A DNA stretch of 64,000 nucleotides from Blastocladiella emersonii ATCC 22665 (GCA_025594325.1 JANHCV010000008.1:682001-746000); one strand, 5' to 3'. Positions 7,295 to 64,000 are shown, counted from the stretch's first letter. Program-made: numbers and translations. Notes: generated from the sequence alone by a model not told the origin.

Positions 7295-8986
7295 ATGAAT
7301 CACTATGGAACTTCATGCAACCTGTTGGCCGAGTCTGCTTCGGCGCTTTGCGATGGCGCAAACGCCCCGCGCCGCGAATCCGTGCCGCGCGCCGATTCCG
7401 GGACAGACCTACCGAACTTAGGCACTGACGGAGGGCGGACCTACGAAAGCTCGCTACTGCAAATTTTGAGTCTGCGCTTACAACTGATTCACCTGACGCT
7501 ACGCATGCGGGACCCTTCAATCGGACGCGGGGAGGTGGGCCTGCTGAAGGAACAATCTGCGCGCGCGGCGCGCGAGATACACGAACTTGAGCGTACCTTG
7601 GCTTCGTTCGAGCGCTCGACCAACAACGATTGCATGCGGGAACGTAATGGACCCACAGCTGATCCGCAACCGCTCACCACTCCCGATGCTGCTCGCCGCC
7701 GCTCGTCGCGCGAGCGACTTCGCGACCGTTCGCCCGTTCGTCCCAAAAGCGAACCCCGCCGAGATCGGTCTCCAGCTCGTCCCCGCCGTGAGCGTTCGCC
7801 TCACCGTCGGGAAGGGCGCTCGCCTCACCGTGGGCACGGGCGCTCGCCATCTCCAAGTCGCTCGCGGCGTGAACGGCGACGGTCGCACTCGCGCTCTCGG
7901 TCCGCATCACGCTCATCGCGACACCGGCACCGGCACCGGCACCGCTCCTCCCGCTCGCGCTCTCCAATGCTCCCAACGTACCGCGAAGTGCGCTCCCTCG
8001 TCGTTGCAGCTGCGCAGGAACTTTCTTCTGCAAAACTTCGCAAGCTTTTCCACCACATGCGCGACACCGGCCCCACTTTTCGGCAAGTTGAAAGCATGCC
8101 GCATCGCTCCACGAACGACCCGCGCGAGTTTGTTGAGTGGGTCCGCCGCGCGGCGGCATCGCCCGACTGTATCCCGCACCCCGTCACGCTTGCACAGGCG
8201 CTGCTGGCGTGCAGCTCGAATGTTCCGTGGCGCGTCTACCACGTCTACTCGGTCTTTATTCGCTACGACACGCCCGAAGAGGAGGCCAAACGGATCTTTC
8301 TCGACTCGGTCAATCCCGCCGATCCTGCGCGCCGCGACTGGGCTGCTCGGTGGCTTAACATTTCTCGAGAGCCCGGCACGCCTGCGACCGAATTTTACCC
8401 CAAGTGGCACGCACTGCTCGAAGAAGCGGTTCACGGCCGCGCCGAGGAGCTTGAGCGGACGTGGCCGATTAAGCTCAGTTTTGGCGAGCGACTGCTCCAG
8501 TTCATGGACCCAGTTCCGACGCAGTTGCACAACATCATCTGGCACGCCGCCGGCACCGTGTCGTACATGAACGACGCCGTCAAAGGGGAGGTATTCGCCC
8601 CGGCTTCCTGCCGCGACGCTCCGTGGCCCATCGGCTGCTGGTTCTGTGTCAAAATTGTTGACTTGTGCCCGCCGTCCAGTCGCGTCCACCCTCGGAACTC
8701 GTGCCCGCTCATCTTCCACCCTTACGCGCTTTCCGAGGCGCTTGTCGCCGCGATGCGCGCCACAGGAATTGACTGGCGGCAGCAGACTAGTAACGCACGC
8801 CCCGCCGACCAAACGCTGGATCGCGTGCGCGCTCGGTTGCGCGCGGCCCCCGTCCGATCTTCCACTGTGCAGATGGGAATGCACGTGGTTGAAGCGGTGT
8901 TCAAGATGGGGCGGCAGCTCCGCGACCGCTTGCTCAGCATGGTTGTGCCAGTGATTGACGAGTTGTGGAACAAGAAACAAAGCTGA
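7295..8986 (+). CDS. RS-rich Gag-like superfamily protein A1
   Basis: Long ORF (track 7262-8986; ATG at 7295); RS tract; core LAQALLAC...RWLNISREPGTPATEFYPKW; CWFC-X13-H-X4-C knuckle; paralogous to 11436 and 16323. Confidence 0.75.
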   Translation: MNHYGTSCNLLAESASALCDGANAPRRESVPRADSGTDLPNLGTDGGRTYESSLLQILSLRLQLIHLTLRMRDPSIGRGEVGLLKEQSARAAREIHELERTLASFERSTNNDCMRERNGPTADPQPLTTPDAARRRSSRERLRDRSPVRPKSEPRRDRSPARPRRERSPHRREGRSPHRGHGRSPSPSRSRRERRRSHSRSRSASRSSRHRHRHRHRSSRSRSPMLPTYREVRSLVVAAAQELSSAKLRKLFHHMRDTGPTFRQVESMPHRSTNDPREFVEWVRRAAASPDCIPHPVTLAQALLACSSNVPWRVYHVYSVFIRYDTPEEEAKRIFLDSVNPADPARRDWAARWLNISREPGTPATEFYPKWHALLEEAVHGRAEELERTWPIKLSFGERLLQFMDPVPTQLHNIIWHAAGTVSYMNDAVKGEVFAPASCRDAPWPIGCWFCVKIVDLCPPSSRVHPRNSCPLIFHPYALSEALVAAMRATGIDWRQQTSNARPADQTLDRVRARLRAAPVRSSTVQMGMHVVEAVFKMGRQLRDRLLSMVVPVIDELWNKKQS

Positions 8987-9312
8987 ATTTCATAGTATGT
9001 ATTGGAAAAATTGGGGGTTACCCACGTCCGTGTGGTTGTACTAAAAGGTGGATCTCGGTCGCAAACGTTGAGGGAGAGGGATGTCCGATAGTTGGTAACA
9101 GCTACACATTCACAAACCGAGCATCAAGATGTTTAGACAATGAAGACATGAAGAGGCACAAAGACTGGAAGCCGATGCCAGCGGTTCAGGCGAGAGCGAG
9201 GTGTGACGCGATTACGAAGCGTAGCCTTCCGCGGCAGGAGGCCCCCCATGGGCTTCCGAAATCAACTGGTGCATGGGCTCTTGACTGCGAGACGCGAGAC
9301 TGACGGCGTGAG

Positions 9313-9333
9313 TCGCGACGAGAAATCACGCGA
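9313..9333 (+). promoter_or_regulatory. Shared upstream motif TCGCGA-N6-ATCACGCGA (BTB gene)
   Basis: About 82 bp before the ATG at 9416. Confidence 0.5.
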
Positions 9334-9415
9334 GCGCGGGGTGATGCGGCTGACCAGATGAACGCGCCTGACTCCCCCACGCACGCTCTCTTGTAGCACA
9401 CGAGCAAACCCCCTC

Positions 9416-10768
9416 ATGATGGAGCAACTTGATGCAACAAATGAAAAACTGCCGACACTTGCCGAATCGCTCGCGATCGAGTGCGAGTGCACCACAAAGT
9501 ATCCGCCGGCCGTCCGCCACCTGCAACGCGTCGCCGTCAGCGGCGAACACTCCAACATGAATGTCGTGGTCCGCGGCAAGACTTATGCGCTGCACCGGGT
9601 CGTTCTCACCCAGAGCCCGTTCTTTCGGGCGCTGCTCGGCGGCGACTGGCACCCAGCCGGTGACGACCACGCGCTTCGCGTTGACTTTTCGCTGTCAAGC
9701 GAGAAGGAGTTGGGCGACGGTGGTGCAAGCCTCGACACCAATGAACGCGCTCTCTACGCGTGGGAAACTGCCATCACCGCCGTGTACGGCGCGTGCACCA
9801 AGCTTATGGCCGCTCGCATGTCGACTTCAAACTTGATGGACATACTTGATGCAGCCCTTTATTTCGGTACGCCACGCGCTGACATGTCAATAAGTCGTCT
9901 CACTCCTGAACACACCCGCGTTTTAGATCTCTCTTCACTTGCGAATGCTTGCCGCGAGTACTACTTGGACCAGGTCGCCAACTGCTCCGCCACTACCGGT
10001 CCGCCATCACCGGCCTTTGTCGCCCTGGCTGTCCGCATGATGGCCCTTTGCTTGGAGGGCGAGCTCCCCAAACCTATCGCTGGGTTGTTTGATCTCACCA
10101 TTGCTCATCTCGAGTTTCTTGGACCTCACCCTATCACGCGCGCGGTCCTAGCTCAGTGTGAGCCCAAGCTTGTCTCTCGCATCGTTTGTTCGCCAGCTTT
10201 CTGGATCCCTTCCGAGTTCCAGTTTTTCGAGTTTCTCGCTGACCTCAAGGTGCCAGCCGTCGACATTCTACGCGCTGTCAAGTTTTCCAACATGTCTGAT
10301 GACGAGCTGTTCCGAGTACTTTCTAATGCGTTTACCCAGAGCGATTCACATTTCCGCTTTGGACTCAGCGCGTTGGCCTTCGAAGCACACAAACTTCGTG
10401 TTTCGGTCGGTCAAGCTAAAAAGGACGATGAACGGCTGCCTCAACCTGGCTACCCTGAGCCGCCAACGACATCCGAACCAATTCGATGGAGTGGCTCAAC
10501 CAAGGACAAGGATGACGGCTTAGAATTAGTTCTGGACACCTTTTTGGCTGCCCAGCGACACTGCCTGCGTGTGACGCTTACATTCCCAGCCGACTCTGAC
10601 GCTGATGTCCATCGGTCCAAATCAATCTTCTTCGGTGGACATTCTCGGCAGCTCCAGGCTACGCGCCAAACGGAGAAGTTGGACTCGTTTGATGTCAAAC
10701 TGTACGTTACAAATGACTTCGTCTCGACTCCTGTTCGATTGTGGCTCACCTCATCCACACATCCGTAG
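9416..10768 (+). CDS. BTB/POZ-domain protein, 450 aa, possibly with BACK and MATH-like C-terminus
   Basis: SNMNVVVRGKTYALHRVVLTQSPFFRALL is a typical BTB N-terminal signature. Confidence 0.8.
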   Translation: MMEQLDATNEKLPTLAESLAIECECTTKYPPAVRHLQRVAVSGEHSNMNVVVRGKTYALHRVVLTQSPFFRALLGGDWHPAGDDHALRVDFSLSSEKELGDGGASLDTNERALYAWETAITAVYGACTKLMAARMSTSNLMDILDAALYFGTPRADMSISRLTPEHTRVLDLSSLANACREYYLDQVANCSATTGPPSPAFVALAVRMMALCLEGELPKPIAGLFDLTIAHLEFLGPHPITRAVLAQCEPKLVSRIVCSPAFWIPSEFQFFEFLADLKVPAVDILRAVKFSNMSDDELFRVLSNAFTQSDSHFRFGLSALAFEAHKLRVSVGQAKKDDERLPQPGYPEPPTTSEPIRWSGSTKDKDDGLELVLDTFLAAQRHCLRVTLTFPADSDADVHRSKSIFFGGHSRQLQATRQTEKLDSFDVKLYVTNDFVSTPVRLWLTSSTHP

Positions 10769-14935: not shown

Positions 14936-15616
14936 TCACGTGACAGGTTCAGACTGCGCGTGCAGAACATACAGGAACGGGTCTCGCTGGACGTTTAGCG
15001 TATCGTACCGGCCTCCGACCCACACGATATCAGCCATACAGTACGATACGAGGTCCGAAAACGACCAGTTTGGATTATCCTCAAAGGTAGCCTGGTCCGC
15101 ATGCAAAGAAAGTGTTGAGCCCGTTACATCCGCCGCGTCACCACTGGAGCCTGCGTTGTCGGAGGCGCGCGTAGCCACGCGATTTCTGAGCTCGATGCCG
15201 GACATGTGCCAGCGGCGTTGAACAAGCGCTATCGTCATTCCCGCTCGGAGCGGCTTCTTTGGCACCGACTGGCCATCCAGGACGAGTGGGGCGAGGTTGG
15301 GATTTTGTTCGCCGACCAAAACATTCGCTTGACCAAACTTTCTGACGATTGCGTCGGTACTGCGGTCCAGAGCCAACAGCGGCGGGTGCGTCTCGCCAGA
15401 CACGAGGTTCGCGATCTCGAGCTGCCCGTGTTGAGTAGGTGCGACGGCCAAGTGGTAAGAATTATGCGTCGCGAGATCGCAGCGCGGAAGCATTCTTGCG
15501 GTAAGGATCTGCGCTGACGTTGGTATCAGACGATCTTCTTCGTTCAAACGCGCGTGGGGCGTCGCGGGAAGGGTCTGGATACGACTCGAGGACGGAGTCG
15601 ACATCAAGGCGACCAT
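14936..15616 (-). CDS. Hypothetical protein, 226 aa; weak FHA-like segment
   Basis: Intact ORF; VLDGQSVPKKPLRAGMTIAL loosely resembles an FHA C-terminal pattern. Confidence 0.35.
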   Translation of the reverse strand: MVALMSTPSSSRIQTLPATPHARLNEEDRLIPTSAQILTARMLPRCDLATHNSYHLAVAPTQHGQLEIANLVSGETHPPLLALDRSTDAIVRKFGQANVLVGEQNPNLAPLVLDGQSVPKKPLRAGMTIALVQRRWHMSGIELRNRVATRASDNAGSSGDAADVTGSTLSLHADQATFEDNPNWSFSDLVSYCMADIVWVGGRYDTLNVQRDPFLYVLHAQSEPVT

Positions 15617-15757
15617 GTTTTTGTCGTCAGGACGGCACTGCGCGACGCTGATGTCAAAATGATGCCAGCGGCGGTGGGCGAACGGTTACAAACCGGGACG
15701 GCACGCCGCGTGCTCTTGAAGTAGCGCAGGGCGAAGCCAGTAGCGCGGGACGAGGCA

Positions 15758-16054
15758 TTGCAGGTTGTTCCCGTCTGTCACCTGGAACTCCTCGAAAATG
15801 ACGCCGCGCGAAATTGGACTCTCCGAGACGGGGCGGTTGCGATGCACCTTGTGCGAGTCGACTGGCGACAGCTCAAGCTAAACGCACGACAGGTGGACTT
15901 TGCACAGTTGCGCAACTTCTTCCTGCCCCCACTCACGGTGTACAAGGCCTGTCGTATTCTCGAGAAGGCCATCGCGCTGGAACTGGGCGTCCGGTGGCGT
16001 CTGCTTCACTGGATGGTCCCAGTGATCAACGAGCTCTGGGAATGGTCCGAGTAG
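15758..16054 (+). pseudogene. Orphan C-terminal fragment of the A-type Gag-like family
   Basis: AMHLVRVDWRQ...LLHWMVPVINELW matches AMRATGIDWRQ...LLSMVVPVIDELW of A1-A3. Confidence 0.6.
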
Positions 16055-16217
16055 AGTGAGCCGCGTGTCAATACACGACTGCGCACGTTGCTCAACATCC
16101 TACGACTTGCGACGCGTCATTGCTTTCCGCGTAGGAATATCGCGCTCATACAGCGCATTGGTGGAGGAGAGCAGCTCTTTTCCCCTCGCGACCTCGGCGG
16201 GAAACTGACGCGGCGCG

Positions 16218-16322: not shown

Positions 16323-18044
16323 ATGCACATGAAACTCTATGCAACCCTTTATCTGAGCCTGCCTCGATACGTGGCGACCGCGGCGACGCGGATAGCTGCG
16401 AGTCGAAAGTTGCCCCCCCCCCTGAGCGCTCCTGCCGCAGGCGCCGACGGTCGGCAGCTGCTTGAAAAATCGTTGATACAGCTCCTCAACCTACGCATCG
16501 AGTCCATTCACATGGCTTTGCGTATGCGCGACACATCGATCGGCAGCAAGGAACTTGCTATTATGGAGCGAACGTCTGCACAGATTGCCCGCAACATCGA
16601 GCGACTGGAGCACGTCGTGGCCACTTTTGAGCCCTTCAAAGGAGTCCAGAACGACCCGGACATGTACGATTCTGGTCCATCCGATCGTCAACACACGTCG
16701 TTGGATCGGGATCGGACCAGTCCTCCTGATCGCTCAAACGAGGACATGCTTCGATCGCGTTCTCGATCCCGAACACGTTCTCGCTCGCGCGGGGAGCTCT
16801 CGTCCCGCCACCGTAGGACGCGCTCGCACTCGCGGTCTCCCGCTCGTACCACTCGGAGGCGGGAGCGGTCGCGCTCGTCCTCCCACGCTCGCTCCCGCTC
16901 TCGTAATCGCTCTCGCTCAAAAGAACGTTCGTCGCACCGCCACCGCCACCGCCACCGCCACCGGCGCTCCCGCTACCGCTCGCGGTCTGCCAAAAAGGCG
17001 GGATCGCAACGCCACCGCCGATCGAGTTCACGTTCACGTTCTGCTGCACGCTCGCCACGTCGGCATCGTTCCCATGGCGACCGGCCAGTACACGAGCTTC
17101 CCATCAACGCGTTTCGCGAGCTTTTCCACTACATGCGCGACCACGGCCCCACTTTCCGGCAAGTCGAGACTCTTCCGCTTCGGTCTACAAACGACGCGCG
17201 CGAGTTCATCGAGCGGCTTCGTCGCGCTGCAGCGTCGCGCAAGTGCGTCCCGCAATCTGTCACGCTGGCACTGGCACTCCTCGCGTGCAGCTCGAACGTG
17301 CCCTGGCGCGTCTACCACGTCTACGCGGTTTTCCTTCGCGCCGACATGTCGGACGAGCAGGCCAAGGCGATCTTTCTCGACTCGGTCAACCCGGCCGATC
17401 CAGCACGCCGCGTCTGGGCCGCGCGGTGGCTCAACCTGCCGCGGACGCTCGGCGCGCCCGTGCCGGACTTCTACGCCAAGTGGCACGCGCTGCTCGAGGA
17501 GGCCGCGCCCGGCGACGCCAAGAAGCTGGAGCGGACGTGGCCGATGCGACTGAGCTTCGGCGAGCGTGTTCTCTGCGCCCTGAACCCGTACCCCCGCGCG
17601 CTGCACGATATTATCTGGCATACCGACGGCACGGTCGAAAGTATGAGCAGAGCCCTGTGCAACTTCACATTTGGCAAGTCGAAATTCGGCTTCAACGACG
17701 AGCCATGGAAGCACGGGTGCTGGTTCTGCAAGAAGTTTGTCAACCTGTGTCCTCCGTCGAGTCGCGACCACCCGCGCGAATCGTGCCCGCTTGTCTTCCA
17801 TCCCTACGCGCTCGGCGAGGCCATTGTTGCCGCAATGCGCGCCACGGGCCTGGACTGGCGGCGCGGCAGTTCACAAGTTTACCGCGACCTCCAGCGAATC
17901 CTGGGACTGCTGAACAAGATGCGCACTCAATCGACTGTGGTGGAGACGGGCAGGAACGTGCTGCACGCGCTGTTTGAGAAAATGGGGATACAGCTCCGCG
18001 AGCGGATCCTGAGCATGGTGGTGCCGGTCATTGACGAGCTCTGA
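16323..18044 (+). CDS. RS-rich Gag-like superfamily protein A3, 573 aa
   Basis: Paralog of A1 with the same core and a CWFC...H-X4-C knuckle; ends DEL* where A1 and A2 read DELW (TGG>TGA). Confidence 0.75.
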   Translation: MHMKLYATLYLSLPRYVATAATRIAASRKLPPPLSAPAAGADGRQLLEKSLIQLLNLRIESIHMALRMRDTSIGSKELAIMERTSAQIARNIERLEHVVATFEPFKGVQNDPDMYDSGPSDRQHTSLDRDRTSPPDRSNEDMLRSRSRSRTRSRSRGELSSRHRRTRSHSRSPARTTRRRERSRSSSHARSRSRNRSRSKERSSHRHRHRHRHRRSRYRSRSAKKAGSQRHRRSSSRSRSAARSPRRHRSHGDRPVHELPINAFRELFHYMRDHGPTFRQVETLPLRSTNDAREFIERLRRAAASRKCVPQSVTLALALLACSSNVPWRVYHVYAVFLRADMSDEQAKAIFLDSVNPADPARRVWAARWLNLPRTLGAPVPDFYAKWHALLEEAAPGDAKKLERTWPMRLSFGERVLCALNPYPRALHDIIWHTDGTVESMSRALCNFTFGKSKFGFNDEPWKHGCWFCKKFVNLCPPSSRDHPRESCPLVFHPYALGEAIVAAMRATGLDWRRGSSQVYRDLQRILGLLNKMRTQSTVVETGRNVLHALFEKMGIQLRERILSMVVPVIDEL

Positions 18045-18373
18045 GGCAAGAAATAGAAGCACTTTGTTCAAGGCAAGTGATCTCCAGTCCCCTCGCCTAC
18101 GACGCGAGCTTCTCTGTCTTTGTTCACATCGAGGGAGCGACCATGTATGGCGGTGCAACGCGGCCATGGCGGATATGCGCCGCGAGACGAGTGTTCAGGA
18201 CGAGAAACTCGTTCAAGATATGCGCTACATGGAGCTCCTTGAGGGCCTCCTCGCGCTTCCTGTCACTTCTGAGAGCGGAATCCCAATGAGGAGGGGTTGA
18301 GCATCAATAAAAACAGCTAATCGTATCATTCGATACACGGTTGCGGGAGAGCGGAGAATCGACCCGACGCGCT

Positions 18374-21399: not shown

Positions 21400-21447
21400 T
21401 TGAGGATGTTGACCGATATCGGAATAGAAATCGCACCATCGTAACTC

Positions 21448-21804
21448 GTGGCTGCGATTCAAATCTTTGGCCTCACCGTCCCCCCAGCGCCTCCTGGAGA
21501 TGCGCCCGACGACGCGTACCTCGATCTGACCACCAAGTGGATCGATAAGCTCTTCGACACGCGGATTCCGCGCGGGACCAGTCCTGAGATCTCCTCGTTG
21601 TTACAGCAGAGACGGCATACGCTGATCCATCTGCTCCGCCTTCCTTCGGACATCCATGTGCGCGCGATTCGCGAAGTTTGGGACGACGTTGGTGCTGCGA
21701 AGATGGACGGAGGGGAGCGTGATGAACGGCATCTTGGCACACACAAAAATAGGTTTTCCCGTGAGCTGAGAACATGGAATACAGTGGTATCTGAGATTAG
21801 GTGA
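21448..21804 (+). pseudogene. Extra duplicated C-terminal fragment of the B-type gene
   Basis: Homologous to the B1 C-terminus and closer still to the B2 C-terminus (about 48521-48790). Confidence 0.7.
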
Positions 21805-23441: not shown

Positions 23442-23446
23442 TCAAG
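23442..23446. repeat. 5-bp target-site duplication TCAAG (left)
   Basis: TCAAG immediately precedes TGTCG and recurs at 39220-39224. Confidence 0.93.
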
Positions 23447-25015: not shown

Positions 25016-25075
25016 GCTGCGAGTACAGTAAACAAAAAGTACAAAGTTGTATTCACAAAGGAGTCTCTGGACTCG

Positions 25076-27418: not shown

Positions 27419-27546
27419 TTTACTTTGATGCGGAAAAACGCAGTCTGGGAGCGGGGGCGGGGCCGTGCTTTTGAAGCGCCGCGATTATCGCTATTGCTGC
27501 TGGCCGTGTCTGGGTACGTGTGCAGTTAGTCACTGCAAAAAGGTAT

Positions 27547-27954: not shown

Positions 27955-28036
27955 AGGCCCAGCTACCCAGAAAAAAGAACTTTGCATTCAAACGCACTTG
28001 AGCCCATGGAGCCTTTTTGTTGACAGTCAGTAAACC

Positions 28037-29164: not shown

Positions 29165-29192
29165 TCCTTTTGTCTCCGCCTTTGTTAATACA

Positions 29193-32245: not shown

Positions 32246-32265
32246 GTTTAACCTTAAGCAACAGA

Positions 32266-32517: not shown

Positions 32518-32594
32518 GGGACAAAAGGCACCTGCCACGGGGAAAAAGGTACCGACATGGGGACGTTTTATTTTTGGTCCATACAGTAACCATC

Positions 32595-51532: not shown

Positions 51533-51691
51533 GGCGCGCTCGGACCACGACCTTGGACCCACTCTCACGCGCCGAGGATCATCGTTATGGTCATTCCTTT
51601 CGTCACTGAATGGGATCGACAACGTAGCGCAACAAGTTTACATTGTCCGAGCTGATACATGCGCAAAAGAACATAGAACGAAGCCACGTCC

Positions 51692-53575
51692 TCACGCGTC
51701 GCTGTACATGCGGTCCGAAAGTCGCGACCTGCGCGCGGGCTTGCCTTCCGCCGGATCCATGGCAAGAACCACCCGCTGCATTGGCAGTTCGGGCGCGGTC
51801 TGCGATGACGAAGGCTGCGCGGGAGGTTCAATGGCAGGCCCCAAGTCCGCCGCAGGAGCGATTGAAGGATTTGACAGCCTGAATTCGGCTCGAGCGGGCG
51901 TGGGTCGGCGGCGAGGATCGACTGCACGCCGGGGCGCGCTGACTAGTTCAACAGACTCGTGCGCAGCGGGCACCGTGTCACAAGTCGTTCGAGAAGCCGA
52001 CCGAGCTGAAGAAGTATCGGTTGGGTGAGGCGGGCTCGACGGAGCAGCTATCTGGCGACGGATCTTTGCGCCGCGAATGCGTCTTGAGACCCGCTCGGTT
52101 TCAGGCACGGGGCTGGGTTTGAGTGGGCAAACCAAGTGGCCGTACTGCTCCACCACGGCGTCAAGCGTGTACTTGTTGAGGTACGCCATTTCCGTAATCG
52201 GGTCCGCCGCGTGGCCGATCGAGTAAAAGACCTTGTCCGCAAAGATTTGCTTAAGCTCTCGGGATCCCCGGCGCGCCGCTGTAACCTTGATCACTTCCTC
52301 TACGATCTCGATAAACCGCGGGAAGAACTCGCGCACCGACTCGCCGGGCCGGAGCTTGAGCGCGTGCCAGCGCTTGACCCAGTCGGGCCGCCAGTTCGGG
52401 TCAGTCACGTCGAGAAAGAGCTTGCGCGCCTGGTTATCGCTCATTGCCTGGTCCAAAAAGAGGGCGTACACCGAGAAGAGTTCGGGCGTTACGTTCGAGC
52501 GCGCGGTGAGAAGCGAGCCGGCAAGCATATTTGGCATTGGAGCGACTTGTTCGAGGTCCTCGAGGAACTCGCGCACTGCCTTCGGGTGGGTGGTGCGCAG
52601 TATGGAGACTCGATGTCGAATCGCCTTGAACAGCCGCGGGTCGTAGGCGCAGGGTATCCCGGGTGGGCTAGGCGAGCGCCGCGACGGTCGTGGCGAGCGG
52701 GAGCGAGAGCGTGGGCGGCTTCGGATGTGAGGCGAGCGAGAGCGGGAGCGGGACCGCCTGCGTGTATTTGACTTTGAACGTTTGCGGGTGCGTGAGAGAG
52801 AATGAGAGCGAGAGCGCAACCGCTTTCGTGAGCGCGAGCGCGGCCGGGATCGCGAACGTTTGCGAGTCCGTGAGTGAGAGCGTGAACGGGATCGCCGGCG
52901 TGACCGGGATGGAGAACGAGTTCGAGGTCGAGGAGCACGTTTGAGCGGCAGTTTCGGGGGAGAGCGAGACCGGTGACGCTGGCGTGAAGTCGGGGCTGGT
53001 TCTGAGCGCTTGCGCGAGCGAGATCTGGAACGGGGCCGGTCGCTACGCTTTCGAGAGCGCAATCGTGGCTCGCGATCCGGTTTCCCCGCGAGTTTGCGCG
53101 GAGATCTAGAGCGATTTTTGGGCATAGGCTTGGCAGCTCGCTCCAACGGTAAGCTCGACACGGCGGCTGCTGATGGAGTAGGCACACGGAGAAGCGAAGT
53201 TGGAGTGAGACGAGGCGACGGTGGCCGCGTGCACAAGCCGGTTGCAGTGGAACTGCGCTCGCTGGGCCTACTTGGACAAAGGCGGGATAGCGGGCTCAAT
53301 ATGGGCTCCCTAAACCGATCCCGGAGCAGTTCCAGGTCCGCGATTTCGTTCAAAGCCTTGCGTGAGCGGAGCGACACGTCTAACTCAGCGCCCACCGTGC
53401 TGCGAGCGGCGAGAGCGGTGCGTATCACGGACACTCGAAGCTCCATTAGTCGGTACAAGACGGTTTCGAGAAGCGCTCGACGGTCCGCCTCGCTATCCGG
53501 AACGCAAGTCGTATGAACATAACGGGCAAGAAGCGCGGCCGCGCCAGGGGCATCCATGGGTCTATCCGATTTCAT
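51692..53575 (-). CDS. RS-rich Gag-like superfamily C1 (ORF 627 aa; probably continues after an intron)
   Basis: Core MLAGSLLTARSNV...RWHALKLRPGESVREFFPRF; ORF ends SRLSDRMYSDA at GC|GTGAGG. Confidence 0.72.
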   Translation of the reverse strand: MKSDRPMDAPGAAALLARYVHTTCVPDSEADRRALLETVLYRLMELRVSVIRTALAARSTVGAELDVSLRSRKALNEIADLELLRDRFREPILSPLSRLCPSRPSERSSTATGLCTRPPSPRLTPTSLLRVPTPSAAAVSSLPLERAAKPMPKNRSRSPRKLAGKPDREPRLRSRKRSDRPRSRSRSRKRSEPAPTSRQRHRSRSPPKLPLKRAPRPRTRSPSRSRRRSRSRSHSRTRKRSRSRPRSRSRKRLRSRSHSLSRTRKRSKSNTRRRSRSRSRSPHIRSRPRSRSRSPRPSRRSPSPPGIPCAYDPRLFKAIRHRVSILRTTHPKAVREFLEDLEQVAPMPNMLAGSLLTARSNVTPELFSVYALFLDQAMSDNQARKLFLDVTDPNWRPDWVKRWHALKLRPGESVREFFPRFIEIVEEVIKVTAARRGSRELKQIFADKVFYSIGHAADPITEMAYLNKYTLDAVVEQYGHLVCPLKPSPVPETERVSRRIRGAKIRRQIAAPSSPPHPTDTSSARSASRTTCDTVPAAHESVELVSAPRRAVDPRRRPTPARAEFRLSNPSIAPAADLGPAIEPPAQPSSSQTAPELPMQRVVLAMDPAEGKPARRSRLSDRMYSDA

Positions 53576-53923: not shown

Positions 53924-54958
53924 TCAACTCGACCGTTCAGCGATACACCGCCGAATAGCCACCACGAGCTCGCGCATCGCCTGCTCGCGCACCTCGGTCG
54001 GTGGGAGCTGGTCCATGGCCATGATCACGTCGCGGCCGCGCACAATGTCATTTGCTCGATCCGTGTCTGTAACCTTTAAAAACTGAGCGCGGGCTTCCTC
54101 GAACCGGCTGAACCAGTCGCGCATGCGGATGAAGATCTTTTTGGTGGGCTGTTTGAGGGCAAACTTGCCGTCGATGCTGATACGCGCTGCTGCGAGTGCG
54201 CGAACGATGGCAACCGCATTCTCCCTTGGAGCGCGGAGGCGAAGACAACCGGAGGTCGAGTGGGCGTGCGCGTCGGGGCGGAGGGTCGAGATTGAATTGC
54301 AGAAGGTGCAGCGTGTGCCGGATCCGTTGGTGCGCGAAGTCCGTCGCGACGCATGAAGTACAGATGCGGGCCTCGACGATGATGAGGGAGCTGTCGCTGC
54401 AGATGGTGCGGCATGAGGGGAAGCGGCAGGAGCGGGCTCAGAGTCCGGGTTTGGCCGATCGCGTCGATAGGATCGAGGTGGGCTGCGAGAGCGTGATCGT
54501 GCGCGAGGAATGACTTTCTCGCGTTCTCGCGACCGCGAGCGAGGTTGTGCGCTCGATTGAACGCGAAACTGCAGGGGCGCGTTGCTGAATGTAAGACCGT
54601 TTGGGTACAACGCTGATCGCGGCGAGGCAGCGGCGGTCCACCCACATGGCGCATGCTCTTTAACGATTTGACCTGGTTCAAGCATGGCTTGCTCAAGCCG
54701 TCCGCAAAGCCGCTCGAGCTCTGCAATCTCCGCTGAAAGCGCGTGCTCTTGCCCTTGCACTGCTGACCCCGAATTGTCCCCAGTTCGAGAGCCAAGCACC
54801 ACGTGCAACAATCGCAGGCGAAGCTCCATCAAAGTGCAAAGTACGCTACTGAGCAAAGTCAGCCGTTCCGCCTCAGTGGCGGGCAGCTGGACCGGCAAGC
54901 CATGATGCGCAAGAAGTTCGGCCGCGTCGATAGCGTCCATGGTGTTGTCTAGTTTCAT
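53924..54958 (-). CDS. Superfamily D1: N-terminal bundle, short RS tract and CTFC-X11-H-X4-C knuckle; Gag-like core deleted; 344 aa
   Basis: Paralog of D2 lacking the central core. Confidence 0.68.
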   Translation of the reverse strand: MKLDNTMDAIDAAELLAHHGLPVQLPATEAERLTLLSSVLCTLMELRLRLLHVVLGSRTGDNSGSAVQGQEHALSAEIAELERLCGRLEQAMLEPGQIVKEHAPCGWTAAASPRSALYPNGLTFSNAPLQFRVQSSAQPRSRSREREKVIPRARSRSRSPPRSYRRDRPNPDSEPAPAASPHAAPSAATAPSSSSRPASVLHASRRTSRTNGSGTRCTFCNSISTLRPDAHAHSTSGCLRLRAPRENAVAIVRALAAARISIDGKFALKQPTKKIFIRMRDWFSRFEEARAQFLKVTDTDRANDIVRGRDVIMAMDQLPPTEVREQAMRELVVAIRRCIAERSS

Positions 54959-55469: not shown

Positions 55470-57464
55470 TTACGCGTCGCGGAACATGCGGTCCGAGAGT
55501 CGGCTTCTGGGCTGGACGGGCTGGACGTCGATCGAGATAAGCGGCATGGCGGTGACCCACAGTCTCGTCGGCGGAGCTGGCGTCGAATCGGTCGATGAAT
55601 CTGAACTGGACGATGCTCCTGCGGCGGGCACTGCATTCGCTGCCGGCATCGAGTTGAGAAGAGAGCGGAGATCATCTGAGCGAGATGTTGGAACAACCGA
55701 GTCCTGCTTCGAGGCGACGGGTGTAGCACCGTTTGATGTCTGAGAAGCGAGCTCGGTTGAGACGAGCCGCCTAGGCGACGTGGCGGGTGTTGTCGCCGGC
55801 GGTGTCGGGTCGCGAGAAGGATGAGCAGGACCAGGGGGCTCAAGCGCCATGGCTGGCTCAGCAGAAGCGGGAGAGCCGGAATTCGTTGGCCAAGACGCGT
55901 CGCCGGAAGAAGGAGTTGGTCGGGGCCGCTCAACAGAAGCATTCCGCGCGATACCGCCGCCGCGAGATTTGCGCAAGCGCTCGGGCGATGGCGATCTCGC
56001 GCGTTCCGCTGCGTCGAGGTTGAGCGGACACTTGATGTAGCCGTACTTCCTGACAATGTCATCGAGCCCGCGATGCTTGCGGAGTACCGCTTCCGTGATC
56101 GGGTCCGCGTCGCGCCCGACCGCGTCGTAAATCTTGTCCGCAAAGATTTGCTTGAGCTCGCGCGACCAGTTCATCGCCTTGTCGAGCTTGAAAGCCTCGC
56201 CCAAGACCTTGAGAAATCGCGGGTAAAGGTCGCGCACCGTCTCACCCGGCTCGAGCTTGAGCGCGACCCAGCGCGTCACCCAGTCGCGCCGCCATTCAGG
56301 GTCCGTCGCGTTGAGGAACACGTGGCGCGCTTCGCGGTCGCTCATGGTTTCCTCCATGAACACGGCGTACACGGCATACAGCTCGGGCGGAACGTTGGCG
56401 TGCGCGGTCAAGAGGGCTGATGCAAGCATGTTGGGCCCGCCAGCCACCTCCTCAACGCTGGCGAGGAAGCAAGTTACGGCGGCCTCGGACGGGTGAGGAC
56501 TGTGAAGCTTGGGGACCCGCTTACGCAAGGCCTTGTACAGTTTCTTGCCGTACGCGCAGGGAATGCCCGGAAGATCAGACCGCGGAGCGCGGGTGCGGGA
56601 GCGTGGCCGGCTGTGATCGCTCGAGGTGGACCGTTTGCGGCGGCGGGAGTGGGAACGGGACCTCGTCCGGCTTCGAGATTGGGAACTTGACCGTTTGTGA
56701 GCGCGAATGCGAGTGCGAGACGAAGATTCGGGGCCCTGATGCGATTGATGCGATGTGCGAGAACGAGAGCGAGAGCGCCGGGCAGCTTTACGCGATGCAC
56801 GGGATGGAGATCGAGACCGCGTTTCCAAACTGGATGCCGAAGAGAGTTTCGAGCGGTGCCGCGAACGGGATTTCAAGCGATGGCGATCGCGGGACTTTGT
56901 GCGAGACGAGCCTTCAGTGTGTGAATGAGAGTGCGAGCGCGACCGCTCACGCCGCGACTTTTTTGCGGATCGTGATGCCGAACGCGAGCGAGTGCGTGAC
57001 GAAGAACGCGTGGAAGGTTGTGAGATCAGACTCGCTGAATCGCGCGGATCGATATGTGCACCGCCGTTTGGGCCCGGGTCGAAGCTCGGCGGCGACGCGC
57101 ACCCACGCGGGCGGGCTGGAGGAGGAGCAAGTGCGCCGGTGATGCTGAATTGATCAGCCCCAACATTGAACGGAATTGGGTAGGAGTCCGGCGCCAACTC
57201 GAGCTGCGTTCGCAGCCGCTCCAGCTCGGCGATATCGGCAAGCGTTGTTTGGCAATCGAACTGGATTCCCCACGAAGCAGAGCTCGAGGTGCGTGCGAGA
57301 GCTGCCGCACGAGTTGCGCTTACGCGGAGCTCCAGGAGCCTCAGGGTGACGCCTTCGAGCAGCGCTTGGCGGTCCGCCTCGCCGTCTGGTACGCGAGTCG
57401 TAGGGACATAACGGGCAAGTAGCGCGGGCTTGCCAGGCGCATCCATGGGCCTATCCGACTTCAT
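55470..57464 (-). CDS. RS-rich Gag-like superfamily C2 (probably continues after an intron)
   Basis: Start MKSDRPMDAPG at 57464 as in C1; core RWVALKLEPGETVRDLYPRF; ends SRLSDRMFRDA at GC|GTAAGT. Confidence 0.72.
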   Translation of the reverse strand: MKSDRPMDAPGKPALLARYVPTTRVPDGEADRQALLEGVTLRLLELRVSATRAAALARTSSSASWGIQFDCQTTLADIAELERLRTQLELAPDSYPIPFNVGADQFSITGALAPPPARPRGCASPPSFDPGPNGGAHIDPRDSASLISQPSTRSSSRTRSRSASRSAKKSRRERSRSHSHSHTEGSSRTKSRDRHRLKSRSRHRSKLSSASSLETRSRSPSRASRKAARRSRSRSRTSHQSHQGPESSSRTRIRAHKRSSSQSRSRTRSRSHSRRRKRSTSSDHSRPRSRTRAPRSDLPGIPCAYGKKLYKALRKRVPKLHSPHPSEAAVTCFLASVEEVAGGPNMLASALLTAHANVPPELYAVYAVFMEETMSDREARHVFLNATDPEWRRDWVTRWVALKLEPGETVRDLYPRFLKVLGEAFKLDKAMNWSRELKQIFADKIYDAVGRDADPITEAVLRKHRGLDDIVRKYGYIKCPLNLDAAERARSPSPERLRKSRGGGIARNASVERPRPTPSSGDASWPTNSGSPASAEPAMALEPPGPAHPSRDPTPPATTPATSPRRLVSTELASQTSNGATPVASKQDSVVPTSRSDDLRSLLNSMPAANAVPAAGASSSSDSSTDSTPAPPTRLWVTAMPLISIDVQPVQPRSRLSDRMFRDA

Positions 57465-57733: not shown

Positions 57734-59607
57734 CTACTCGAGACTCCGCCGAATCGCGACAACGAGCTCGCGCAGCGCCCACTCGCGCACATTGGGCTCC
57801 GCGACCCGGTCCATGGCCCAGATCACGTCCCGGCCGTACGCAATGGCGTCCGCATCCGCTTGGCTCGCGTCCGAGGTTTGCCGCAACTTGGCGTGTGCAC
57901 TCCCGAGCAGGCCGACCCAGTCGCGCAGGCGTAAGTAAATCTTCTTGGCCGGCTCCCCGAGGCCAAAGTCCTTCCGCACGCTGATGTCCGCAGCAGCGAG
58001 CGCGCGGATGATGGCGAGCGCGTTCTCCCTTGGTGCGCGGAGGCGCGGGCAGTCGGCGGTCGGGTGCGTGCGCGCGTCGGGGCGGAGGGCATGGACCGAG
58101 ATGCAAAATGTGCACGGCGCGCGTGATTTGTTGGCTGAGGACGAAACGGAATGCACGGCAGGTGCAAGTGGAGTGGTGCAGAGGCGGGTTTCGAGGGTGA
58201 TGAGAGGGCTGCGGCTACAGATGGTGCGACGAAAGCAACGGGTGCCGGCGCTGGCGTAACGTTCGGGGATTCGGCGGCACGGGCAGTTGCAGAGTGCTGG
58301 CGCGATCGTCGCTTTCTCTGTCTAAAGGTGGAAGGACGCTGCGCGACAGGCAGCAGCGTGCGAGAATCGGCGTTTCCCCGACCGCGAGACCCGCGCGCAT
58401 TCGGCTTGGCTGGAGGGCTCGTCGAGAGCGGACACATAAGATGCCCGTGTTGCGCGACCATGTCATCGAGCGTAATCGACTTGATCCGGATCAGCTGCGA
58501 GATTGGGTCGACGGCGCGTCCCAGGGTCAAATACAGCTTGTCTGCAAAGACTTGCTTGAGCTGCTGAGACCCGCGGCGCGCGGCGTCAACCACGGTGACC
58601 TCCTCGAGCAAGGCAAGGAACCGCGGGTAAAACTCGCGCACCGACTCGCCTGGTTGGATCTCCAGCGCGGTCCACCGCGTCAGCCAGTCGCGCCGCCAGA
58701 TTGGATCGGCCGCGTTGAGAAAGACGCGGCGCGCTTCGTTGTCGCTCATCCGCTCGTGTATAAATACAGCGTAGTTGGCATAGAATTCGGCCGGCACCTT
58801 GGGACGGGCTGTGAGAAGCGCGCCCGCGAGCATGTTGGGCGTTGTTGAGACGACTTTTTCGATGGCTGCCAGAAACTCGGCGACCGCGCGCGGGTGCGGA
58901 TAGTAAAGCGTTGGGACGGCCGCCTTGATGGCCAAGTACAGCCGCGAGTCGAATGCGCAAGGCAAGCCGGGTGGGCTGCGCGAGCGGGACCGGGGGCGGG
59001 ATCGTGCGCGAAAATGCGAATATGAGTGCATCAGAGTACGAGATGCAGACCGCGAGCAAGAACCAGGGCGAATGCGAGGACCATTGAGCGATCGATGCGG
59101 GCTGTGAGATCGGGATTGCGCCCGAGGGGAACATGCCTCGCGTTCGCGCGATCGTGACCGCGAGCGAGAGTAGGAGCGCGCGCTCGATTGAGCGCCGGCG
59201 TGTGTGGATGGGCGGGCGAGCGCAACGTGAGCCGGCGATGATGATGATGGTGGTCCAGACAAAGGAGGAGTGGCCCATCCGACGATCGGGACAGACACGC
59301 GGTCGGCATGTTCTACTCGGAGTAAAGCACGCTCGATCAGGTCCCGAAAACGCACGAGCTCCTCTATCTCTGCTGAGAACGCGTGGCAAAGCGGTCCGTG
59401 GCCCTGTAAAGTTGGAGCGGAGTCATCCTGGATCCGAGCGGCAAGCACCGAGCGCATCAAGCGCACGCGGAGCTCCATTAACGTGCAAAGTACGCTACCT
59501 AGGCAACCCCGCAGTTCCGTTTCCGAGTCGGGCAGCCGGGCCGGCAAACCATAGCGCGCAAGAAGTTCAGCTGTGTGCAAGGAGTCCACGTTATCGTCCA
59601 GTTTCAT
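57734..59607 (-). pseudogene. RS-rich Gag-like superfamily D2 (core plus zinc knuckle), frameshift near 58155
   Basis: Start MKLDDNVD at 59607; core RWTALEIQPGESVREFYPRF; knuckle domain lies in the other frame (ORF 57734-58156). Confidence 0.72.
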
Positions 59608-60283: not shown

Positions 60284-62620
60284 TCACCCGCTGCCGCACA
60301 TGCGGTCCGACAGCCGGCTCCTGGGCTTGGCCTCGACCATGTTGTGCGACAGGACCGCTGTGACCCACCGCCTGGTTGGTGGCGCTGGCGTGGGCGCGGC
60401 CGATGCCGCTGGGCTGGGCAATGCAGCAGCGGGAGGCACTTGAGCAACAGGTGCGCGAGTCAAAGGGGGCTCAACGGGTACACGGGCTGCAGCAGGTCCC
60501 GCGCTCGGCACCGCCAGCGAGTTGAGAATTGAGCGAAGATCGACCGTGCGAGTCGGGCGGAGACCGACTGAGGGACTCGGCTGAACCGCTGGTTCTCGCG
60601 GCGGCGAAGCGGCGGGGGTAACGCTGTGCGATGGCTGAGAGTCGAGATTCGCCAAGACGTGTCGCCGAGGCGACATGGAAGGTTCTGAAGCTGGCGGGGT
60701 TGGGTCACGACGGGAAGTAAATCTGCGAGGCGGTTCAACCCCCGGCGCTGGACTCGTAGCTGGTGGCGTCAAGTTACGACGAGAATCGGCGATGAGAGGC
60801 GGCTCAACCGTCAGCTCTGGATCTGCAGCTGGCGATGTTGGGTCGATATGAGAAGTGAACGTGCAAGGCGGTTCGACAGCTGGCGCTGGATCTAAAGCAA
60901 GCGGTGTAGGATCGCGACGAGAAGTGTACGCGCGAGGCGGTTCGACCGCTAGCGCTTGGTCCGAAGCTGGCGGTGTTGGATCGCGACAAGAATCAGCCAC
61001 GCGAGGCGGTTCGACTACCGGTTCGGGCACAGATGTCCCAAGAGCATCAGAGATCAACGGCCGAGGTACGCCGCTAGAAGAAGCGGTCGGGCCAAGCCGT
61101 TCGGACGAAGCGTTCCGGTTGACCTCGCTGCGCTGGGGCTCGGGCGACGGCGAGCGTTCCAACGTATCGGGATCGAGCGGACACCGAATGTGGCCGTACC
61201 TCTTGACCACATCCTCGAAGTTGTAATTCCTGCGGTGTACCGCGTCCGTGATCGGGTCCGCGTCGTGCCCGACCACGTAGTAAATCTTGTCCGCAAAGAT
61301 TTGCTTGAGCTCGCGCGAAAACTTTCTCGTCTCGTCGAACTTGATAACCCCCTCCAAGCCCTTGATGAATCGAGGGTAAAAGTCGCGCACAGTCTCGCCT
61401 GGCTCGATTTTGAGCGCGACCCAGCGCGTGACCCAGTCACGCAGCCACTTGGGGTCCGTCGCATTGAGAAACACGCGCCGCGCTTCTTTGTCGCTGGTAG
61501 TTGGGTCCATAAACACAGCATACACGGCGAACAGATCCGGCATAACGTTGGCGCGGGCAGTCAAGAGCGCGGACGCAAGCATATTGGGCGCGCCAACCAC
61601 CTCCTCTATCTCGGCAAGGAAGCGGTGCGCGGCGGCCTCGGACGGGTGAAGACTGTGGAGCTTGGGCACCCGTGCCCGCAAAGCCTTGTGTAGGGCCGGG
61701 TCGTATGCGCGATAGAGGCAGAGAGGATCGGGTCGACGACGAGAACGGCTGCGCGAACGCGGTCGGTTGCGATGGCGCGAGGTGGACCGACTGCGAAGAC
61801 GAGTGTGAGATCTGGACCTCGGTCGGCTTCGAGGCCTCAAAATTAAACGCTTGCGAGTGTGAGCAGAAGAATCGGCGCGCCGATGCGATAGACGCAAGTT
61901 GTGAGAACGAGAACGAGAAAGAGAGCGAGAGCGTTGGCCGCGCTCGCGCGATGTGCGGGAAAGAGATCGTGACCGCGATCGTGAACGAGACCTCGTGTGC
62001 GATTCCGATCGCCGGCGCGAACGAGAGCTCGAACGAGGACGGTCCCGGGATCGCGTACGAGAAGCGCGTTCCGTTCGCGATTGAGAGCGCGATCGATCCG
62101 AGCGCCGCAGATTATTCGCGGACTGAGAAGCTGATTGTGAGCGGTCGCGTGACGAAGGACGTGTAGAAGGCTGTGAGGGAAGCTTTTTGGCATCGCGCAA
62201 GCTATCGGGTGCTTGGCCGTTCAAACTTGAGGTGGAACGGGACAGCTGGGCCTGTTCGCGGAGATGCACTTGCGCAAGACTAGGCACGCAGTTGCCGGCG
62301 AGGTGACTGACTCCATCGTGGAAGGGAATCGGGCAGAGGTCGGGCGTCAAGTCAAGCTGCGACCGCAAACGCTCCAGGTTCGCAATTTCAGCAAGTGCCG
62401 TTTGAAAATCGAGCTGGGTGCTCCAGGAGACCGCTTTCGAGGCCCGCGAGAGAAGTGCCGCGCGCATGACGGTTACACGCAGGTCCATGGTCCTGAGCAC
62501 CACGGCTTCGAGAAGTGCATGGCGGTCTGCCGCACTGTCCGGAACCCGACTACCAGAGAGCTCATAACGCGCAAGAAGCTCGGTCGCGCCGGCCAAATCC
62601 ATGTTATTATCCAGTTTCAT
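60284..62620 (-). CDS. RS-rich Gag-like superfamily C3 with five 23-aa VEPP...DPTP repeats
   Basis: Start MKLDNNMD at 62620; core RWVALKIEPGETVRDFYPRF; ends SRLSDRMCGSG at GG|GTGAGC. Confidence 0.72.
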   Translation of the reverse strand: MKLDNNMDLAGATELLARYELSGSRVPDSAADRHALLEAVVLRTMDLRVTVMRAALLSRASKAVSWSTQLDFQTALAEIANLERLRSQLDLTPDLCPIPFHDGVSHLAGNCVPSLAQVHLREQAQLSRSTSSLNGQAPDSLRDAKKLPSQPSTRPSSRDRSQSASQSANNLRRSDRSRSQSRTERASRTRSRDRPRSSSRSRRRSESHTRSRSRSRSRSLSRTSRERGQRSRSLSRSRSHNLRLSHRRADSSAHTRKRLILRPRSRPRSRSHTRLRSRSTSRHRNRPRSRSRSRRRPDPLCLYRAYDPALHKALRARVPKLHSLHPSEAAAHRFLAEIEEVVGAPNMLASALLTARANVMPDLFAVYAVFMDPTTSDKEARRVFLNATDPKWLRDWVTRWVALKIEPGETVRDFYPRFIKGLEGVIKFDETRKFSRELKQIFADKIYYVVGHDADPITDAVHRRNYNFEDVVKRYGHIRCPLDPDTLERSPSPEPQRSEVNRNASSERLGPTASSSGVPRPLISDALGTSVPEPVVEPPRVADSCRDPTPPASDQALAVEPPRAYTSRRDPTPLALDPAPAVEPPCTFTSHIDPTSPAADPELTVEPPLIADSRRNLTPPATSPAPGVEPPRRFTSRRDPTPPASEPSMSPRRHVLANLDSQPSHSVTPAASPPREPAVQPSPSVGLRPTRTVDLRSILNSLAVPSAGPAAARVPVEPPLTRAPVAQVPPAAALPSPAASAAPTPAPPTRRWVTAVLSHNMVEAKPRSRLSDRMCGSG
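60690..61030 (-). repeat. 69-bp coding tandem repeat, about 5 copies
   Basis: VEPPRVADSCRDPTPPASDQALA and four variants. Confidence 0.8.
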
Positions 62621-62908
62621 TACGTTGCATAGAGTTATTTGCCAAGCTGCGTCGCTGGGGGTGAGGGCTCTGCAGAACGAGCGGCTGCGCAAAACTTCTC
62701 GGAGAGCAGCGGGAGTGTGGCGCCGAGTGTGGCGCTGCGGGCGCACGCGCAGCCACCTGATTGATTAACGCGTCTCGCGCGCGGAGACGCGCTGACGGGG
62801 GCGGCGATCACGGAGTCCGAAACTAAGAGGAACGCACGAGAGAGTCGGGTGTGCTAGGAATATTGGCGATTGGTAGCGTTAGGAACTGCTCCCCTCCGTG
62901 CTGGGCTC

Positions 62909-62996
62909 TCAACCCCACCCCTCCTCCACCCCTCCCCCACCCACCCCTCCCCAACCCAACCTCAACTCAACCTCAACTCATCCTCAACTCAGCCCT
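62909..62996. repeat. C-rich low-complexity tract (G-rich on the minus strand)
   Basis: Runs of CCCC and CTCAAC repeats. Confidence 0.7.
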
Positions 62997-63069
62997 TCAG
63001 CGCGTCAATGAAAGATACATGCGCTGCGGCGTCGTAGTTAACGCGTTGTGCGGAAAGAAATACGCGCGA

Positions 63070-64000
63070 TTAGAGGATGAAGAGCTTCTTAGTGGGCGCC
63101 TTGTCGCCGAACATCTTATTTACGCTGATGCCCGCGGCGGAGAGCGCGTTCACAATAGCAGCCGCGTTCTCTTCAGGAGCCCGGAGTCGGGAGCAGTCGG
63201 CGGTCGAGTGCGTGCGCGCGATGGGCCAAAGGCCCGGAAGTGATAAGCAAAAGTTGCAACAAAGGTCGGACCCGCGACTGGAAGGAGGAGTCGGCCTTGC
63301 CGTTGAGGTGGAGGATCGGTCCGAAATCGGGACAACACTCGGCTTTTGAGCGACGAGTCGTTCCCTGGAATTGTGCAAAGAATCTGGCTGGGGACCAGAC
63401 AAGGGTGCGCGCAAAGCTTGAGCAGCCAATTCAAGTGGCAGAGAAGATGATGCATTAGCGGACGGAGATTGATCGTGTTCAAAGGCGATTCGCAAAGTAT
63501 TCCGCGAGGGAGAATCAAGAGAAGCGCGCTGACGGCCAGGCGCACGCTCGGGCGATGGCGAGGAAACCGATCCGCGCGATCCAAACGGGCAAGTGAGGTG
63601 GCCGTGCAACTTCACCATATCGCCCAAGCTGCAGCCTTGATCAAACACCATCTCCGTGAGAGGATTGACTGCAGCACCCAAGGCGTAAAAGTGCTCGTCC
63701 GATAGCACTTGCTTGAGCTGGCGATTCCGCCGGTTTCTTGCCACTTCGAGGTCAATCACCTCCCCCAACATCGCGAGGAACCGCGGATGAAAGTCGAGCA
63801 CCGACTCGCCCGGAGCAAGCTTGAGAGCGCGCCAGCGGGCCACCCGTTCGCGCCGCCAGTTTGGGTCCGTCGCGTTGCAAAAAGCGCGGCGGGCCTCCTC
63901 ATTGCTCGTTGTCTCCTCCAAGAATATCGCAAAAGGCCGAGTACAGGTCGGGGTGCACGTTGGATCGCGCCGTCAGGAGCACGGAAGTGAGCGTTTTTGG
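63070..64000 (-). CDS. RS/Gag-like superfamily D3, 5' end outside the window, C-terminus possibly truncated
   Basis: RWRALKLAPGESVLDFHPRF core; CNFC-X11-H-X4-C knuckle; TAA at 63070 falls earlier than in D1 and D2. Confidence 0.65.

Follow-up and report, generated by a model that had tools for sequence, protein, structure and literature searches.

Host genes derived from the gag of retroelements are known mainly from animals. The knuckle of retroviral nucleocapsid (NC) lies downstream of the capsid (CA) domain and is spaced C-x2-C-x4-H-x4-C, with a 4-residue loop, and SR splicing factors combine one or two RRMs with a C-terminal arginine-serine (RS) domain. Among fungi, three cases of co-opted gag genes have been described, all of them single-copy and all from Dikarya (Crtg12-14; PMC8321522), and Ty1-prime is a Gag-derived restriction gene of yeast (PMC10951436). 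The prefix JANHCV denotes the genome of the blastocladiomycete fungus Blastocladiella emersonii ATCC 22665 (PMC9730499), and the stretch of DNA analyzed here (the window, 64,000 nucleotides, G+C 56-67%) corresponds to approximately positions 682,001-746,000 of its contig JANHCV010000008.1. The window contains arrays of modular genes, the full-length forms of which encode an N-terminal helix pair, an RS tract, a helical core, and a zinc knuckle. With a probability of roughly 0.5, these genes constitute a capsid-like, RNA-binding family without pol that derives remotely from Gag and has spread by tandem duplication.

In common with orthoretroviral CA-NC and the Gag of Ty3/gypsy elements (Metaviridae), the family has an all-helical domain of approximately 180 to 200 residues with about ten helices, followed by a Cys2-His-Cys finger, and, as in retroelement Gag, a basic disordered tract accompanies the core and the finger. 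It differs from retroelement Gag in that the basic tract consists of RS repeats and precedes the core instead of following it, that the finger loop has 12 to 24 residues instead of 4, and that there is no significant sequence or fold match, no pol, no long terminal repeats (LTRs), and no target-site duplications (TSDs). Arc/dArc, PNMA, RTL/SIRH (including PEG10), SCAN, and Crtg12-14 are likewise stand-alone, pol-less gag-like genes under purifying selection, and PNMA, RTL, and SCAN are multigene in animals, as is the family described here. Genes of the Arc, PNMA, and RTL type keep a recognizable similarity to a named retroelement lineage, whereas the B. emersonii family has none, and in contrast to the Crtg12-14 genes it has reached at least 47 tandem copies within a single species from an early-diverging fungal lineage.

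The sampled DNA consists of the window and seven further regions (eight regions, 218 kb in total), and membership was called from all-against-all BLASTP, tblastn, and hhalign comparison with a family profile. There are 47 core-bearing loci in this DNA, with a maximum of 13 in 25 kb (region L005), and most of them, including most of the L005 copies, are unannotated. An earlier note on the window had proposed an expanded modular family without pol or LTRs, which is borne out by these copies; its figure of about 16 loci becomes 15 in the window (A1-A3, B1-B2, C1-C2, D1-D4, E1-E2, F, and one C-type tail fragment), under a lettering that deviates slightly from the one it used. The genes are intronless, and the core is present in 11 of the 15 loci, which comprise ten uninterrupted open reading frames (ORFs; 322-778 aa), three broken genes, and two fragments, located as follows.

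7295-8986, plus strand: A1, full-length, with N-helix, RS tract, core, knuckle (8636-8704), and C-terminal helices
11403-13075, plus strand: A2, a broken A-type gene with one frameshift and one in-frame stop
16323-18044, plus strand: A3, full-length A-type
18617-19585, plus strand: B1, coreless, with N-helix, S/P-rich linker, knuckle (18-residue loop), and C-terminal helices
19744-21399, plus strand: C1, full-length C-type, core and knuckle modeled from 20356-21396
21448-21720, plus strand: C-type C-terminal tail fragment, downstream of C1
47168-47788, plus strand: F, divergent and truncated, consisting of the core alone, with two stops within the homology block
48533-50014, minus strand: C2, C-type, with one premature stop
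50321-51289, minus strand: B2, same as B1
51692-53575, minus strand: D1, with N-helix, long RS tract (fraction 0.77), core, and P/S-rich tail, without knuckle
53924-54958, minus strand: E1, with N-helix, short RS tract, knuckle, and C-terminal helices, without core
55470-57464, minus strand: D2, D-type, start Met probably at 57464
57823-59607, minus strand: D3, D-type, whose core (58387-58974) is the domain modeled with high confidence
60284-62620, minus strand: D4, D-type, with a 69-nt x3.2 coding repeat in the tail (60797-61015)
63070-64000, minus strand: E2, with core and knuckle, truncated at the end of the window and containing one or more frame changes

From N- to C-terminus, the order of modules is N-helix pair, RS tract, core, zinc knuckle, and C-terminal helices, and all five are found in the A and C types. 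The helix pair, approximately 60 residues long, was aligned in 11 copies across all types, including B and E. In its richest 60-aa window, the RS tract contains 53 to 77% Arg plus Ser in A1 (fraction 0.68), A3, C1, C2, and D1-D4; in E1 the tract is less pronounced (45%), and the B type is without one. Three columns of the core, a module of approximately 180 residues, are nearly invariant: W97, K140, and F143 in the numbering of the D3 core. The knuckle spacing is C-x2-3-C-x12-24-H-x4-5-C in 14 of 26 aligned members, and also in B1 and E1, with a loop of 12 to 24 residues in 16 of 16 knuckles measured, and the Cys/His ligands are invariant wherever the module has been retained. D-type proteins lack the knuckle and possess a P/S/T-rich tail with a conserved last motif, B and E1 lack the core, and E2 has both core and finger. 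Modules are shuffled in this way among subtypes A to F. Alignments and motif scans placed the N-helix, RS tract, core, and knuckle, all four, where the earlier note had put them.

The core is the module that links types A, C, D, and E2 in BLASTP. Between types, identity is 32 to 41% for C versus D (E-values of 1e-21 to 1e-26), 29 to 44% for A versus D (1e-8 to 1e-13), and 45 to 48% for E2 versus D, and within the D type, D1-D4 share 49 to 61%. A1 and A3 are 62% identical over 320 aa (BLASTP), and the broken A2 matches A1 at 71% over 335 aa, with an N-terminal block in a different frame at 60% over 121 aa (tblastn). C2 is 62% identical to C1 over 343 aa by tblastn and 63.5% over 285 aa by BLASTP, and B1 and B2 are identical to each other (100%, BLASTP). 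The remaining loci were attached through the family profile or by translated search: B1 over its knuckle module (hhalign probability 61%, E = 8e-5), E1 (96%, 2e-9, its N-terminus being 47% identical to that of D3), and F (96.7%, 4e-10, found also by tblastn). The tail fragment matches residues 461-550 of C1 at 55% (tblastn) and is 91% identical to the C2 tail at the nucleotide level.

The D3 core was modeled with AlphaFold2, from a 24-sequence alignment, as an all-helical domain of ten helices with a mean predicted local distance difference test (pLDDT) of 92.8 and a predicted template-modeling score (pTM) of 0.86. When this model was compared with the PDB using Foldseek, the top match was the immature capsid of human T-lymphotropic virus 1 (HTLV-1), and 33 of the 42 matches listed were capsids of HTLV-1, human immunodeficiency virus 1 (HIV-1), Rous sarcoma virus (RSV), bovine leukemia virus (BLV), or murine leukemia virus (MLV), and so come from delta-, lenti-, alpha-, and gamma-retroviruses. 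The capsid alignments span approximately 200 to 240 columns, i.e., both lobes. In the BFVD library the top match was the HTLV-1 core protein (E = 0.17, probability 0.63), and 22 of the 50 matches listed were from reverse-transcribing viruses, namely 17 Gag proteins of retroviruses, four coat proteins of caulimovirids, and ORF1 of a fungal metavirus. The knuckle is placed downstream of the core, the same position as in Gag. We also count in favor of the capsid hypothesis that it had been raised from sequence alone, prior to any fold search. Taken with the evidence that follows, the predicted structure gives about one chance in two that the core is a capsid homolog.

A number of results weigh against capsid homology. 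None of the Foldseek matches passes the significance line of E = 0.001: all have E-values of at least 0.17 and probabilities of at most 0.66, with template-modeling (TM) scores of 0.26 to 0.40 and root-mean-square deviations of 9 to 20 Å, and such low TM scores and high deviations are expected for lobes that are differently hinged, and equally for chance similarity between helical proteins. In BFVD, a fragment of herpesvirus ICP4 scores on a par with the Gag matches, and the redundancy of HIV-1 capsid structures in the PDB inflates the number of capsid matches. The Ty3 capsid and Arc are absent from the fold-search matches, and Arc, PNMA, and RTL were not returned by any search. Foldseek with the longer C1 model (347 residues, core and knuckle with disordered parts, pLDDT 72.6) gave noise only, with the MLV capsid at rank 48, and an hhalign comparison of one half of the core with the other gave no signal of an internal lobe duplication (probability 0.6%). 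No sequence-level tie to the Gag, CA, NC, Arc, or PNMA families was found. In a first Pfam scan, 0 of 10 members had a Gag-type match at E ≤ 1, and 0 of 26 members matched Gag (Retrotrans_gag included), capsid, Arc, or CCHC entries at E ≤ 10, a scan in which the HMMER filters may drop very weak matches. Family profiles made from two alignments found no capsid, and nothing relevant, among PDB sequences. The knuckle loop, with 12 to 24 residues instead of the retroviral 4, gave no zf-CCHC match. The derivation from Gag proposed in the earlier note therefore stands only in part: the fold matches, although non-significant, lean toward it, and the sequence, the knuckle spacing, and the lack of a named Gag lineage lean away from it.

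These same observations could be accounted for by an orphan, lineage-specific family of nuclear RS-domain proteins without retroelement ancestry, whose likeness to capsids is generic helical-bundle similarity. The core and the long-loop finger would then have arisen, or diverged unrecognizably, within the Blastocladiales, and the proteins could function in the metabolism of RNA or provide the scaffold of speckles or condensates. We regard this explanation as possible, if on balance unlikely. It would fit the missing Gag-family sequence match, the non-significance of every fold match and the equal score of a non-Gag protein, a knuckle spacing unlike the retroviral one, RS tracts of up to 77% Arg plus Ser, and the lack of retroelement parts nearby. 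SR proteins of the SRSF7 type resemble the family in combining an RS-repeat tract with a Cys2-His-Cys finger. However, Pfam found neither an RRM nor any other typical SR-protein domain in the members, the RS tract is not C-terminal but internal, ahead of a large helical domain, and the knuckle spacing is different; the sole RS-related Pfam match, RSRP, is composition-driven and sub-threshold (E = 0.0011). What further argues against an orphan origin is that retroviral capsids, together with the Gag or coat proteins of other reverse-transcribing viruses, are the commonest class of match in two independent libraries and over the whole domain, and that a helical core followed by a Cys/His finger is the order found in Gag. 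In addition, the copy number, the arrays, the weak codon adaptation, and a setting rich in transposons and viruses suit a selfish or conflict-driven family better than a housekeeping one.

The distribution of the family was assessed with an exhaustive profile search of 1.84 billion representative proteins of any length, which also covers longer fusions that are invisible to a word-index search. It returned 21 matches at E ≤ 0.001. Look-up of 19 of them gave hypothetical proteins of B. emersonii ATCC 22665 in every case, and 17 of these are encoded solely on contig JANHCV010000008.1, with locus tags from H9P43_006651 to H9P43_006885; one of the 19 is on contig 1, and one is duplicated under a second locus tag. 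P0020, a bacterial repeat protein, matched the Cys-rich columns only and was rejected as spurious. There was no Gag or Gag-Pol protein among the 21 matches, and no relative in another species among those looked up, which represent one strain in a search of protein representatives only. On the evidence of this search, the family appears to be restricted to Blastocladiella. It has no relative outside itself at the threshold used, and no origin from a named retroelement lineage could be traced.

A word-index protein search with the C1 core had no match, not even to C1 itself, because the deposited gene models differ from the ORFs, and exact look-ups of the D1 and B1 proteins found no record. The deposited GenBank models P0001, P0003, and P0004 on contig 8 are fragmentary or chimeric: P0001 consists of three fused cores, and P0004 joins the tail of C1 to the adjoining coiled-coil gene. 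A literature search for Gag- or capsid-like genes and for polinton- or virophage-like elements in Blastocladiella found no paper on the family.

No reverse transcriptase, protease, or RNase H was found in the family proteins, in the called neighbors, or in 26 other long ORFs of the eight regions, and no LTR-like direct repeats flank any of the 47 copies. The single direct-repeat pair detected in all of the sampled DNA (at least 88% identity, at least 100 nt, within 20 kb) is inside the terminal inverted repeat (TIR) of an integrated virus, and the only two rve integrases, one of them in the window, are both in TIR-bounded polinton-like DNA viruses. It had been stated from the window that no reverse transcriptase, protease, or LTR stands beside any copy; this holds in the window and in all eight regions, the seven further regions having no copies with LTRs or pol. 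The copies are therefore not ordinary LTR elements, autonomous or otherwise.

Within the sampled regions, the copies are arranged head to tail in arrays, together with co-duplicated intergenic DNA and neighboring genes. Pieces paralogous to a 450-aa gene without a Pfam domain (9416-10768) are found at 4456-4751 and at 15034-16139 of region L002, beside A-type or other family copies, and the gene seems to have been co-duplicated with the family. A 15-nt x7.8 tandem array is present at 6798-6914, upstream of A1. The two sides of the window are related by an inverted segmental duplication, whose arms, given without strand, are as follows.

18368-21714: left arm, carrying B1 and C1
48530-51538: right arm, carrying C2 and B2

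The arms are 100% identical over 1500 nt (18368-19867 versus 50039-51538, i.e., B1/B2 and their flanks) and 71 to 91% identical thereafter, and C1 and C2, which adjoin the 100% repeat, are only about 76% identical. A stretch of 1500 identical nucleotides beside C genes so diverged points to recent gene conversion or to assembly collapse.

The ratio of nonsynonymous to synonymous substitution (dN/dS) is 0.26 to 0.42 in ten paralog pairs, at dS of 0.5 to 1.7, the higher of these dS values being near saturation, which indicates that the coding sequence is constrained. The paralogs are old and under purifying selection overall. The description of the family as rapidly diversifying thus applies to duplication, module loss, and gene conversion; the dN/dS values show purifying selection and no positive selection. 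ORFs that stay open under purifying selection without pol are what is expected of a domesticated gag gene.

Gag-only, non-autonomous retroelements, copied in trans by autonomous elements elsewhere in the genome, could also produce intronless genes of high copy number with weak codon adaptation and the hint of a Gag-like fold. We consider this quite unlikely: none of the 47 copies has flanking LTR-like direct repeats, they form head-to-tail arrays with co-duplicated neighbors and intergenic DNA, nearly all are on one contig rather than dispersed, the paralogs are old and constrained, and there is no Gag-Pol relative in the 1.84 billion proteins.

Codon usage was compared between the family and two conserved host genes of the window.

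2605-3966, minus strand: trypsin-like protease gene
about 42694-45700, minus strand: multi-exon chitin synthase gene, searched ORF by ORF

The G+C content at third codon positions (GC3) is 0.61 to 0.73 in the family genes (0.83 in B) versus 0.91 to 0.97 in the two host genes. The lineage-specific neighbors at 9416-10768 and 22340-23461 are as low in GC3 as the family. Two clearly distinct codon-usage classes are thus adjacent in the window. The low GC3 and weak codon adaptation are consistent with weakly expressed, young, or selfish genes.

Low GC3 would also be compatible with decaying pseudogene arrays, or with gene-prediction noise in GC-rich DNA, that yield no functional product, as would the 3 of 13 gene-sized window loci that are broken, the two fragments, and the fragmentary or chimeric GenBank models. 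This is the explanation to which we give the least credence, since ten ORFs of 322 to 778 aa are uninterrupted, dN/dS is 0.26 to 0.42 at dS of 0.5 to 1.7, the conserved core folds confidently in the model, and the Cys/His ligands are invariant wherever the knuckle has been kept.

Between the two groups of family loci in the window, there is an element that does not belong to the family.

23447-39219, no strand assigned: integrated polinton-like DNA virus, with TIRs of approximately 1.5 kb and a 5-bp TSD, TCAAG

Its genes encode a D5-like primase-helicase (DUF5906), an rve integrase, a fiber protein whose gene contains 84-nt coding repeats, and an A32-like packaging ATPase. The ORF after the ATPase encodes a putative capsid protein, so labeled from its position alone, and this putative major capsid protein had no match among PDB sequences. 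The integrase ORF has 278 aa, compared with a 389-aa stop-to-stop frame in its 95%-identical paralog in region L003, and a tandem array of 11- to 14-nt units is found at 27546-27879, between the helicase gene and the next ORF. The left end of the virus overlaps the 3' end of the coiled-coil ORF at 22340-23461, and the insertion may have altered this gene. A second virus-like segment, at 850-6914 of L003, contains an integrase 95% identical and an orf375 homolog 64% identical to those of the window virus, and a Herpes_ori_bp-type helicase instead of the D5-like one; the differing helicase types suggest replication-module exchange between related elements. The L003 segment adjoins family members and a chitin synthase gene with a weak HMG-box match.

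The earlier note had the family surrounding an endogenous virus. Family members are indeed found on both sides, but the virus is an independent insertion with its own TSD. Of the eight regions, the window and L003 have a polinton-like virus beside the family, and L002 and L005-L008 have no viral gene nearby. Organization of the cluster around the virus was rejected in view of the virus's own TSD and the virus-free arrays elsewhere, and these arrays in five other regions suggest shared residence in an insertion-tolerant compartment rather than a functional unit. It is accordingly very unlikely that the family represents cargo or structural genes of DNA viruses, either of the nearby polinton-like viruses or of an older integrated large DNA virus. 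Such an origin would explain why the viruses adjoin the family in two regions, but not a TIR-bounded virus that contains no family gene, nor the lack of any relative among the viral proteins of the profile search or in BFVD, nor the prevalence of arrays without a virus. Weak matches to a PIF1-like helicase were obtained in gene fragments near two family arrays (L006 20328-20942 and L007 20736-21826), which may be Helitron-type remnants. Transposons and viruses seem to abound in the compartment that houses the family (about 0.19-1.30 Mb of contig 8).

If the family is of remote Gag ancestry, the core would be a two-lobed CA-like domain, and its position before the knuckle would echo the CA-NC order of retroelement Gag. 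The genes would descend from a very old or very diverged gag, without pol or LTRs. Reverse transcription would no longer be their mode of spread; the genes multiply by duplication, both in tandem and of whole segments, by loss of modules, and by gene conversion, inside one chromosome compartment rich in repeats and integrated viruses. The N-helix, as an oligomerization module, and the core would mediate self-association of the proteins, and the disordered RS tract and the knuckle would bind RNA. They may thereby act as Gag-like RNA-binding or RNA-packaging proteins, or as capsid-interfering proteins.

Mouse Fv1, Ty1 p22/p18, and Ty1-prime are also pol-less capsid-like proteins, a likeness that is functional speculation, and the copy expansion, the module shuffling, and the surrounding integrated viruses and transposon remnants suggest a conflict setting like that of restriction factors. 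Unlike Fv1, Ty1 p22, and Ty1-prime, which are single genes close to the element that they restrict, the family was matched to no target element, and its pairwise dN/dS gave no sign of positive selection. A stronger version of the proposal, in which a genuine Gag descendant with at least 50 tandem modular copies acts by capsid-like interference or RNA packaging against retroelements or the co-resident DNA viruses, is doubtful at present.

For the annotation of this model organism, the finding means that a family is fragmented or missing in the deposited gene set, and for its genome, that the family marks a megabase-scale compartment rich in viruses and transposons. Its novelty as a Gag-type family is conditional on the fold of the core, and should the capsid likeness fail, what is left is an orphan family that is well defined and has a new helical domain, predicted with confidence. 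A true capsid fold of the core would show that capsid genes are able to survive in an early-diverging fungus without pol and to multiply there on a massive scale, that they can gain RS tracts and an altered zinc finger, and that they can evolve by the tandem duplication and module shuffling that are typical of conflict-driven families. As genuine Gag descendants, the B. emersonii genes would be the first large Gag-derived family expansion known in fungi, with a new architecture built around the RS tract.

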